The notes beneath the pieces were generated by a model, which saw only the letters and a list, made by a program, of their open reading frames with translations, searched no databases and had not been told where the DNA came from. The position numbers were made by a program, and so were the translations under genes. Shown piece by piece: positions 26,548-39,591 of a stretch of DNA of 64,000 nucleotides. Source of the stretch: Octopus bimaculoides. Taxonomy: Eukaryota. Position 1 is the stretch's first letter, and every line of letters starts with the position of its first letter. The stretch lies in assembly GCF_001194135.2 (NCBI RefSeq), contig NC_068991.1:75414-139413 (forward strand). Reading direction: 5' to 3'.

Positions 26548-29500
26548 TTACACAGGAAAATTCTGAAATATCATAAAATATTTAGACTTAATAAATAATT
26601 AAGAGCTACAGAAGCAGTATTAATACCAAAAAGAAATCTAGATTTCCAACTTAACACGGATGTTGTGTTAGAAAACGGAATGCTGTGTTAACTTTGAGAG
26701 GACCTTTCATATGGACTCATGGTGCATTGAAGCACTTGCTACAGCCCCCAGAACTGCAAGATCCTCCGATTGCACCCTAATATGGGTTTCTCAGTGATGT
26801 GCCTGAACAGACACTGAAATTCTATATATAGTTGACAAGAAATTTGGCTGATATTGTGCTGCTGGACATTTTGTCACTGAGGAACCAATAGTAGGATGAA
26901 ATCAGGTGATCAGGCACTTCCAGCAGCCACAGCAGACAATTCTTGTCTGTCAGCAATATAACTACGAGTACTTTTATACACCATGAGTTCCGATGAGAGA
27001 TACTCTCAACTTGAATAAAGCAGTATTCTGTGTTCTAATGCAGCTCATATGTCAAGCTGGAGGTCAAGATTATCTATTTAGACTTAATGTTTCATTTTAT
27101 CAATGTAGTTCCTAAATGTTGCAATATCAAAGAGCTGATTGGTAAAGGAGGGATGACATTGGTGAAATATTGATGTTTCAATCAGATTGAGTGATAGGAT
27201 ATTTCTGTTTCACTTAGATCAATGTAAGAAGTGAAAGGGACATTGATGGGAAGTGCAACAATTTAGACATTATTTCACAAAACACACTAGTGTCTCTTGT
27301 GAATGTGTTATGAGACTCCCAAGGTGGGCATTAGTGTATGAACAGAATCAAAAACGTATTCAGTATTAATCTACATTTCTACACATTGACTCCATGAAAT
27401 CTCATTAATAACAACATACAGAAGATGATTATTATAAAGAAACACCAGAAATTTATTGTTCCAGACAAAACATGGATTATTTAAAAGGAAAGTAAAAACT
27501 GAAGAATAGTCATGTTTACAATAACCCTCCCCAACAAACACATAAAAGATGTGTGCATGTACATACACACATATGCTAAATTATGTGTGGGTGGATGTGT
27601 TTGAATATCCAAATAGGAGAAAAGTCACTCAATATAGATTATTCAGTCAGATTCATCTTTTTTAGTTGTTTCTGAAGGATTGCATATGGGGAGAAAGTGA
27701 ATGGCATCAGAATGGATCATCAGATTCAAATGAATGGGCATCTCTTTATTAGCAATAGCTAGAGGAAAAAGTGATTGTAGAAGAGAAACAAAAGTGAGAG
27801 AATATGATTGGGATAATAGTGTGGAAGAGGAAACGGTAAAGAAGGAGACTGTGCTACAGGGAGTAATGATGATGGAGCAGTAATGAGAGGGTGTAATAAG
27901 AGAGAGATATTCATATCAGCAGCTGACAGTTTGTTGGTGAGAGCATAAGTGATGGTTGTTTTAAAAACGGGCAGTGGTAATGAACTCCCCATTGGGAAGA
28001 GGAAGTGGTAACTTGCAGTATTAAAGGGTTAGGGTTAGTTGGTAAGAGAGAGAGAGTGCAAATGAATAGCATCATTATCATCACAACACCATTTTAATGT
28101 CTGCTTTTCCATTTTTTGCTTTAGCTAAATGAAATTTGCTTAGATAAATATTCAACAGCCAGGTGCCGTTCCTGTCACCAACCCTCACTTGTTGCCAAGC
28201 ACTGAGTATTTCCTCATGACCAGACAAGTTATTTGAAAAGTGGAAATGACATCATTTGTAGAATGGTGATGCTCATTTAGGACCATCATGTGACATCAAG
28301 ATAAGGATATATATACACATAATAGGCTTCTTTCAGTTTCCATCTGCCCTACCCATTCACAAGGCTTTGGTCAGCCCAGGTCTATTACGTAAGAAACTTG
28401 CCCAAAGTGACGATCTCGAGTTTGAATGCAAGCAGTATTGTGTGTCTGGGTCGGTTGTTTCATTCTACACACCTCAGTTCCCCTGGCTCTTGAGAGCAAT
28501 CTCACCCATCACTGCACCCATGTGTGATTAATGAATAATAAAAGACTTTGGTCTTATGTTGTTGGCTGATTCCATCAAGTACGACTTCTCCATAGCAAAG
28601 GTAATCAACTTCTCTGCTGTTTTAATATAGAAATAGTTTCATTATTGAGTATTCCCTTCTCTAAATATTGTCATCATGGCAACAATACCAAATTTTTAAT
28701 AATCTCATAAAAATTTATAATGATACAAAGATTGTCAACAGCAATGATGTTTACTGACCTTTAAGGTTCCTAAAATTTGCTCAGCAGAAGGTCGATCACT
28801 TGGAGTCTGACTGCGATAGGTAAACAAGATTTTACCAGTTTGGTCAATGATGAAATCACCACCCATCTAGCAAGAAATAATAAAGTTTAGAATCAAACTG
28901 TATCAGGTTTTAATTTTCAGTCAATGCTCTTAATATCACAAGTTGTGTGTCTGTACAAGTAGGGTATACAGTAATCTCTTGACTACTGTGGGTGTTACAT
29001 TTCAAAACCTCCCACAGAAATAATTCAAATATAAATCCCTATCAACTGCAGAAATCCAGATATACTGAGGAGTTTGCCGTAGAAATTCACAAAAATCCAC
29101 GATGTACTGAGTGCATGATAGGTGAACCGTGATATACTGAGTGCGCAAGGGGTGGACTGTGATATGATAAGGGACTACTGTATATGGACTTGTGTGGTTC
29201 CTGCGATCATTCTTCTCATGTAATTCGCATTGTTTTGCTCAGTCTTTAACATCCAGTCGTAGTCTTAAGTTTATGATGGAAATAGAACTAAAAGTTATGA
29301 TTTCCATCCTAACTTATAATTTCAGAATAAGTTATCACATTTCATCTCACTCATCATCATCATCGTTTAACGTCAGCTTTTCATGCTGGCATGGGTTGGA
29401 CGGTGTGACTGAGGGCTGGCAAGCCAGAGGGCTGCACCAGGTTCCAATATGATCTGGCAATGTTTCTACAGCTGGATGCTCTTTCTAATGCCAACCACAC

Positions 29501-39200: not shown

Positions 39201-39591
39201 CTGTTCCTTTCATCCTTCTGAGGTGGATATTAAATATGTAACCAGTCGAGTATAAGGTCAATTGGGCGATCTTAGGTTAAATAGCGGACCAATTTCCACA
39301 CCTCATACTCCTACTTTCTTAAAAAAAAAAGGAAGATATATGAGAAACCGGTCGGACTAAGAAGACCAGTTGGAATACCTTTCATGACCCGTCTGCTCAA
39401 TTCGGGCAAACCTGGGGTTAAACAGCAGAATTAAAGATCATACCTTTCCTGTTAAATTCTGCAATGCCATCTTCAAGAATGATTTTACCGTGTTTCAAGA
39501 ATTCTTCAAGTGCAGCGGAAATATTTGAGGTAAAAACAGAATTTGATTCCAACGATTCTGATGTTTGACCTTTGTTTAAGTCGGAGGCCAT
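26548..39591 (-). CDS. SELENOL: Selenoprotein L (thioredoxin-like/AhpC-TSA fold, UxxU motif), 320 aa, 10 exons
   Basis: Exons: 39591-39444, 37557-37479, 36554-36501, 34907-34862, 33692-33441, 32528-32406, 31168-31130, 29792-29694, 28866-28759, 26562-26548. All GT-AG with consistent phases, 963 nt total. Translation includes CLENFISSKVGKMF...EFEIEWDQFLHTVD...LLLVLQRHFA-U-LP-U-RKHVMELE...ILLLFFGSQKSIKQWL...IYSALGL...EDIYQMGGDFIIDQTGKILFTYRSQTPSDRPS. TGA at 33485-33483 and 33476-33474 (codons 179 and 182). Confidence 0.93.
28969..29180. mobile_element. pogo/Tigger-type (Tc1-mariner) MITE, 212 bp
   Basis: TA|CAGTAATCTCTT...AAGGGACTACTG|TA: 12-bp TIR (10/12 match) flanked by TA target duplications. 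Confidence 0.7.
29903..30885 (+). mobile_element. RTE LINE fragment (RT C-terminus and PHD-like finger) in SELENOL intron 7, with gap-flanking duplication
   Basis: Closely similar to 10070-10880 ([39 protein letters not shown]). 30092-30250 is repeated at 30261-30419 across a 10-N gap. Confidence 0.85.
35272..35492. mobile_element. piggyBac-type MITE, 221 bp
   Basis: TTAA|CCCTTTCAATAC...GTATTGAAAGGG|TTAA: perfect 12-bp TIR with TTAA target duplication (35268-35271 and 35493-35496). Confidence 0.85.
37040..37170 (-). mobile_element. Second SINE family remnant (TTCATCC...GGGTCGATAAA-type core); others at about 36020, 39190, 52870
   Basis: ggatgaaaggcaaagctgacattggcagaatttgaactc on the plus strand is the reverse complement of a B-box head gagttcaaattc...gcctttcatcc. 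Confidence 0.5.

Follow-up and report, generated by a model that had tools for sequence, protein, structure and literature searches.

The window analysed here, a stretch of 64,000 nucleotides (nt) of Octopus bimaculoides DNA (contig NC_068991.1, positions 75,414 to 139,413 of the forward strand), carries on its minus strand, between positions 39591 and 26548, a gene of ten exons whose single reading frame contains two in-frame TGA codons. The gene is real, expressed and spliced, and its two UGAs are unedited in the mRNA. We consider with high confidence that the locus is the octopus orthologue of selenoprotein L (SelL/SELENOL), in which both UGAs are most likely decoded as selenocysteine (Sec, U) by means of one selenocysteine insertion sequence (SECIS) element.

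The gene was rebuilt without the exon list of an initial annotation that had been made from the letters alone: the five downstream introns were taken from joints in RNA reads and the four upstream exons were placed with the O. vulgaris protein P0003 (178 residues). In this independent rebuild the ten exons join to 963 nt, that is 320 codons and a TAA, and an AG acceptor and a GT donor flank every exon. The initial annotation had proposed ten GT-AG exons with fitting phases forming one 963-nt frame, with two TGAs as the sole internal stops, and each of these numbers and positions was reproduced exactly. The two TGAs, codons 179 (33485-33483) and 182 (33476-33474), stand in the context LLLVLQRHFA-U-L-P-U-RKHVMELE; the minus-strand letters near 33480 read CAG CGC CAC TTT GCA TGA CTA CCC TGA CGT AAA CAC GTA ATG GAG, with a GT donor downstream, and the remaining two frames of the same 963 nt contain 16 and 28 stops. 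The parts of the gene and the evidence for each are as follows:

39591-39444, minus strand: exon 1, coding part; ATG at 39591-39589; joint 39444-37557 in 49 raw reads and in contigs from 3 runs
37557-37479, minus strand: exon 2, 79 nt; joints 39444-37557 and 37479-36554; matches O. vulgaris P0003
36554-36501, minus strand: exon 3, 54 nt; joint 37479-36554; the loose-end consensus at 36501 is the start of exon 4
34907-34862, minus strand: exon 4, 46 nt; its two ends recur in reverse complement as the loose ends at 36501 and 33694; 433-nt contig
33692-33441, minus strand: exon 5, 252 nt, bearing U-L-P-U; sequence; joint 33441-32528; ~40-45x raw reads in two runs
33485-33483, minus strand: TGA codon 179, first predicted selenocysteine; conserved across loci; no variant at or above 2% in RNA reads
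33476-33474, minus strand: TGA codon 182, second predicted selenocysteine; conserved across loci; aligns with Cys47 of PRXL2B
32528-32406, minus strand: exon 6, 123 nt; joints 33441-32528 and 32406-31168
31168-31130, minus strand: exon 7, 39 nt; joints 32406-31168 and 31128/31130-29790/29792, a cut ambiguous by 2 nt that GT-AG sets at 31130-29792
29792-29694, minus strand: exon 8, 99 nt; RNA joints
28866-28759, minus strand: exon 9, 108 nt, encoding QMGGDFII...DRPS; joints 29694-28866 and 28759-26562
26562 to ~26100, minus strand: exon 10, with the 4 last codons and the TAA (26562-26548), then a 3' untranslated region (3'UTR) of ~450 nt; joint 28759-26562
26126-26121, minus strand: AATAAA polyadenylation signal; transcript coverage stops just downstream

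The sequence of exon 5 is present in 18 sequencing runs from one organism, mostly RNA. A check for RNA junctions at all nine introns, which the initial annotation had asked for, found reads or contigs behind every one of them. Seven appear directly as CT..AC joints, with 14-49 raw reads each and contigs from three further runs, and introns 3 and 4 are supported through loose ends and contigs. For intron 3, the loose-end consensus at 36501 reads, in reverse complement, as the first bases of exon 4; for intron 4, 85 raw reads from three runs have a loose end at 33694 that corresponds, again in reverse complement, to the last bases of this exon. Of two contigs with the lengths expected, one of 433 nt covers exons 5-4-3-2 and one of 432 nt covers exons 1-2-3-4-5.

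The transcript extends past the coding span at both sides, from a 5' end at ~39600-39650 to a 3'UTR reaching ~26100 (both values approximate). At the 5' end, read coverage stops at ~39600 and contigs stop at 39642-39650; at the 3' end, contigs cover the exon from 26562 as far as 26080-26188, and the depth of raw reads drops below position ~26200. An in-frame upstream ATG at 39665 was considered as a start codon and rejected, because transcripts end at or below ~39650 and this ATG is therefore outside the mRNA; no further ATG occurs before 39591. One RNA contig (X13) departs from the genome at 39601, 10 nt upstream of the ATG, into 20 unrelated letters, which may represent an alternative 5' exon or a chimera.

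Octopus and other cephalopods edit their mRNA heavily, and the editing of UGA to UGG would give tryptophan. Exon 5 was examined for editing in three raw RNA runs, with variants reported from 2%. No change was seen at 33483 or at 33474, that is at either UGA, at an RNA read depth of ~40-45x in each of two runs, and the RNA agrees with the genome base for base over this exon. The sole RNA variant in exon 5 is a heterozygous C>T at 33637, carried by ~40% of the reads in two runs and absent in the third; on the mRNA this is G>A and changes codon 128 from Arg to His (R128H), and O. vulgaris bears His at this residue.

Signs of editing were seen elsewhere in the gene. In intron 9 (26681-27024), a 520-nt RNA contig (X13) carries nine T>C changes on the plus strand, seven of them within 37 nt, and the contig of a second run shares the changes at 27006 and 27024. 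Read on the gene strand they are A>G changes, a pattern characteristic of pre-mRNA hyper-edited by ADAR.

Conservation and protein family

The initial annotation had named random codons or frameshifts at these sites in cephalopod orthologues as evidence against the gene; O. vulgaris and Argonauta hians both keep the two TGAs, the former with an identical TGA CTA CCC TGA and the latter with TGA CTT CCC TGA. The changes in Argonauta are synonymous and affect a codon between the TGAs and 5 of the 10 codons on either side (around and between the TGAs: GCA>GCC, CTA>CTT, CAC>CAT, GTA>GTG and CTA>CTG). Exons 2-9 are all present in Argonauta, in the same order. Between octopus and Argonauta, the ratio of nonsynonymous to synonymous substitution rates (dN/dS, Nei-Gojobori) is 0.14 over 129 codons before U179 and 0.22 over 133 codons after U182, with dS greater than 1; with 0.22 downstream against 0.14 upstream, selection at the protein level is of the same kind on the frame beyond the UGAs as on the one preceding them. 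The homology, first estimated at ~140 residues beyond the motif, extends over 138 residues past the second UGA, and this stretch is under purifying selection.

It had also been predicted that standard annotation would split or truncate this gene, and this is the case in O. vulgaris and Argonauta hians, in both of which it is cut at the first UGA: the O. vulgaris annotation lists two entries named "hypothetical protein", of 178 aa before the UGAs and of 134 aa after them, and that of Argonauta hians lists products of 160 and 134 aa.

The motif RHFA-U-L-P-U-R was found in further marine eukaryotes, on two transcripts (L004, a Logan transcript, and L010) and on a 555-kb eukaryotic contig (L007). 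The fish Siganus canaliculatus (L003, 817 and 4916) has two tandem copies, reading RHYAULPURDH and RHYGULPURKHVAELE, both of which are annotated with the Sec segment skipped, and the gar model W5NFI6 leaves out the four motif codons. A bacterial contig (L008/L009, 2354-2908), on which bactofilin and QueC are the neighbours, encodes RHLGULLUREH and has been called as open reading frames (ORFs) of 42 and 135 residues. Its U-L-L-U followed by the same C-terminal domain resembles the octopus protein and is consistent with a marine-bacterial SelL, but its N-terminus is short and without the eukaryotic helical region, and in this bacterial neighbourhood the insertion of Sec would depend on a SECIS of bacterial type within the ORF.

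Two Pfam families match the 320-residue protein: AhpC-TSA_2 (PF13911) over residues 189-300 (E=8e-17) and AhpC-TSA over residues 151-277 (E=9e-9), the latter match spanning the motif. Residues 39-100 gave weak PDB matches to designer pentatricopeptide repeats, with no single significant stretch, and we rejected these as helical-repeat noise. A hidden Markov model search of the library with the post-motif domain, for which C-terminal pieces from O. vulgaris, Argonauta and a metagenome served as queries, returned 1357 relatives at E<=0.001. The best 150 of these 1357 are mostly ORFs of ~125-140 residues that start no more than a few residues from the motif, the pattern left where members of a family are as a rule cut at the UGA. 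We read 19 longer matches, of which seven have W-L-P-W or W-D-P-W and two have C-L-L-C or C-L-F-C, the rest being without the motif segment or disrupted. Database proteins with W-L-P-W or W-D-P-W are P0005, P0022, P0054, P0078, P0080, P0129, P0141 and P0170. In P0005 (locus L004), the one that was checked, the DNA has TGA where the protein has W, and the tryptophan therefore comes from the gene caller.

In an alignment of 12 sequences the homology is full-length, N-terminal helical region included, and the octopus U residues fall in columns of W (that is, of U) or C. The profile of this alignment, which gave 5 matches in a word-indexed protein database, matches PRXL2B (prostamide/prostaglandin F synthase, PDB 9us9) with E=4.6e-12. 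In this match lRhfaWlpWR is aligned with LRRFGCVVCR, which puts C44 and C47 under the two Sec columns. PRXL2B belongs to the same thioredoxin-like fold family, and the columns of its redox CxxC coincide with those of U179 and U182 in a shared context (LRRFGCxxCR and LQRHFAUxxUR); however, it has Cys at both positions, is ~200 residues long and is without the 130-residue N-terminal region present in the octopus protein. We considered whether the octopus protein is itself PRXL2B and rejected this, given its 320 residues, its extra N-terminal region, the predicted Sec in place of Cys and an E-value of only 0.15 for the octopus single sequence against 9us9; PRXL2B is a relative, not the orthologue.

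Closer in build are the fish Cys paralogues (for example Megalops LOC118787347 and Larimichthys LOC104937232), which have the same length and two-domain architecture with CLLC or CLFC at the UxxU columns, and which differ in the flank of the motif (IRQFSC..CR, against LRHFAU..UR in SelL). They are annotated intact, as "prostamide/prostaglandin F synthase-like" or "peroxiredoxin-like 2C", because Cys replaces Sec.

A candidate SECIS element in the 3' untranslated region

Just downstream of the stop codon, with its AUGA starting 19 nt past the TAA, lies a SECIS-like stem-loop composed of the following parts:

26541-26468, minus strand: SECIS-like stem-loop; Rfam SECIS_1, conservation with Argonauta, minimum free energy (MFE) fold
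26541-26535, minus strand: helix 1, 5' arm, GCAUGUG
26528-26525, minus strand: core AUGA
26523-26516, minus strand: helix 2, 5' arm, GGCCCCAG
26512-26510, minus strand: apical AAA, 12 nt after AUGA
26493-26486, minus strand: helix 2, 3' arm, CUUGGGCU
26485-26482, minus strand: 3' core, GGAA
26474-26468, minus strand: helix 1, 3' arm, CACAUGU

When the 3'UTR alone was searched, the Rfam SECIS_1 model gave a full-length match at 26537-26472 (18.4 bits, E=0.89), and the orthologous site in Argonauta is the top Rfam match there, at 30.5 bits (E=3.3e-4). The first ~100 nt of the 3'UTR are the sole significant collinear alignment between the octopus and Argonauta UTRs (E=7e-10). Unconstrained MFE folds of the sequences from octopus, O. 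vulgaris and Argonauta all take the two-helix shape of a SECIS, with AUGA facing GGAA in an internal loop, and across these three octopod sequences 90.5% of the pair cells are standard pairs. Judged from these sequences and folds, 26541-26468 probably functions as a SECIS.

Reading of the two UGA codons

SelL of fish and aquatic invertebrates was described in 2007 (Shchedrina et al., as cited in PMC2397514, PMC3316567 and PMC13134290). A single SECIS serves its two Sec residues, which stand two positions apart (PMC3316567); the protein has a peroxiredoxin-like motif and is able to form a diselenide (PMC13134290). It has been reported from aquatic organisms only, marine bacteria included (PMC2397514), and its orthogroup is almost exclusively aquatic (2026 preprint, bioRxiv 10.1101/2025.10.02.680026). 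A 2012 survey recorded it in a sponge, a placozoan, a cnidarian, an annelid and amphioxus, and found none in the mollusc Lottia gigantea (PMC3473315). We found no report of a cephalopod SelL in the literature searched.

The octopus gene resembles this family in its two UGAs two residues apart, its U-L-P-U identical to that of the Siganus copies, its peroxiredoxin-like fold, its full-length alignment including the N-terminal helical region, its one candidate SECIS and its marine host; the closest proteins, from Octopus vulgaris and Argonauta hians, fit the aquatic occurrence. It differs from the fish relatives in sequence, with only ~27-32% identity, none of the differences being structural, and in a candidate SECIS that is unusually near the stop and has a GGAA 3' core. 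The identification as SelL proposed from the letters alone is supported: the UxxU lies on the CxxC of a peroxiredoxin-like fold, the fish U-L-P-U genes align over the full length, and the whole matches SelL as published.

Sec insertion, SECIS function, the diselenide chemistry and a physiological role are what we infer for this gene, along the following lines. One spliced mRNA with ten coding exons would be translated into a 320-residue protein consisting of a ~130-residue N-terminal helical region followed by a peroxiredoxin-like thioredoxin fold (AhpC/TSA_2). UGA 179 and UGA 182 occupy the positions of the CxxC redox site and are most likely both decoded as selenocysteine, and a single SECIS stem-loop ~446 nt downstream of the first UGA would direct this decoding. 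The U-L-P-U would then alternate between a diselenide and a pair of selenols, which is the cycle reported for fish SelL.

Several points weigh against this reading. The SECIS scores of octopus (18.4) and Argonauta (30.5) both lie below the Rfam gathering score of 35, and an Rfam scan of the 22 kb from 20000 to 42000 (E<=10) returned no SECIS, only microRNA look-alikes driven by microsatellites. The folding energy lies within the ordinary range (z = -1.05 and -1.21), and no compensatory pair was seen in the three octopod sequences, in which all five changes are one-sided (wobble). The 3' core is GGAA and not of the commoner UGAU type. As for the name, no protein called selenoprotein L occurred among 64 fish proteins from a search seeded with the fish Cys paralogue; because no retrieved entry is so named, the family name rests on secondary literature and on the fish U-L-P-U/di-UGA genes. 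The Rfam search also returned no SECIS in L003-L006, searched whole, nor in the 3'UTRs of L004, L007 and L010; since the model finds none in these other family members, it appears insensitive for the SelL family, and those negatives say little.

A regulated variant of selenocysteine decoding, which we rate as very improbable, would make the two UGAs a selenium-dependent switch: ample selenium would give the 320-residue redox enzyme, and under limitation translation would stop at 179 to leave a functional helical protein of 178 residues. The stop-proximal SECIS with its GGAA core might then tune the balance between full-length and terminated products.

That the UGAs are true stops, giving a 178-residue N-terminal protein and perhaps a separate 134-residue C-terminal protein from Met187, is very unlikely in our view, although the public O. 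vulgaris and Argonauta annotations list just such products and an AUG lies five codons past the second UGA. Both pieces are on one mRNA, the cut would bisect the thioredoxin fold right at the CxxC site, and the codons that separate and directly follow the UGAs are conserved, their changes being synonymous only. Met187 is not conserved, fish having T or A and others D or S, so that the family has no conserved internal start. Furthermore, the Cys-form paralogues read straight through, and a SECIS-like element is conserved in the 3'UTR.

The heavy mRNA editing of cephalopods, the many database homologues with W-L-P-W at the motif and the A-to-G cluster in intron 9 of the same gene could each be taken to mean that the UGAs are recoded to a standard amino acid, for instance to Trp by adenosine-to-inosine editing (UGA to UGG) or by near-cognate read-through. 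To this we give even less credence: no G was seen at either UGA at the depth and threshold given above, the W-L-P-W was traced to TGA in the DNA or transcript (L004) and so to a Trp supplied by the gene caller, the paralogues and PRXL2B have Cys and not Trp at these columns, and the same TGAs occur in fish and in a bacterium, both without recoding of the cephalopod kind. A decaying pseudogene or an assembly artefact, as two in-frame stops and two gaps of N within the span might suggest, is effectively refuted by expression and correct splicing in many runs, RNA identical to the genome base for base over exon 5, no further stops or frameshifts, a dN/dS of 0.14-0.22 and the nature of both gaps, which are intronic overlap artefacts.

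Read as SelL, the locus corrects a systematic annotation error, by which at least two published octopod genomes split or truncate the gene at the first UGA; most of its best-scoring relatives (the best 150 of 1357) are likewise present as truncated ORFs of ~130 residues, or with a spurious Trp at the Sec positions. It also places SelL in cephalopod molluscs, which fits a SelL kept by aquatic animals and lost on land, and this molluscan copy adds to the known distribution because the 2012 survey found none in Lottia (PMC3473315). As a member to be expected in a family described in 2007, it reveals neither a new mechanism nor a new family, and an octopus SelL would not surprise a selenoprotein specialist. 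The locus, its transcript and the candidate SECIS nevertheless offer a test case of two UGAs three codons apart, served by one SECIS, in an animal that edits its RNA heavily.

Assembly gaps and repeats in and around the gene

Two assembly gaps lie within the gene, both in introns:

38811-38820, no strand: assembly gap in intron 1; the flanks 38721-38810 and 38821-38910 are identical (90 bp, 100% identity); not in the mRNA
30251-30260, no strand: assembly gap in intron 7; the flanks 30092-30250 and 30261-30419 are identical (159 bp, 100% identity); not in the mRNA

Spliced reads and contigs jump both gap-bearing introns, and the reading frame is therefore untouched by the gaps. Gaps of 10 N with exact direct duplications on their flanks look like unmerged overlapping contig ends, and the true sequence is probably one copy without a gap.

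Around the first gap, the stretch 38590-39030 of intron 1 shows an RNA depth far above that of the SelL exons, with backward joints from 39029 to 38658/38665 in which GTGGAT is inserted, and with short skips over the gap; the probable cause is a transcribed repeat, or else a tandem element that the assembly has collapsed. Five other stretches, intronic or downstream of the gene (31846-32239, 31058-31451, 30467-30663, 29285-29678 and 25790-25997), have depths of hundreds to thousands of times that of the exons and many loose ends, and are interspersed repeats present in many transcripts. Further downstream, at 24166-24270, a near-perfect hairpin matches the mir-5444 model on both strands (45 and 41 bits, well short of the gathering score of 90) and is probably the inverted repeat of a mobile element.

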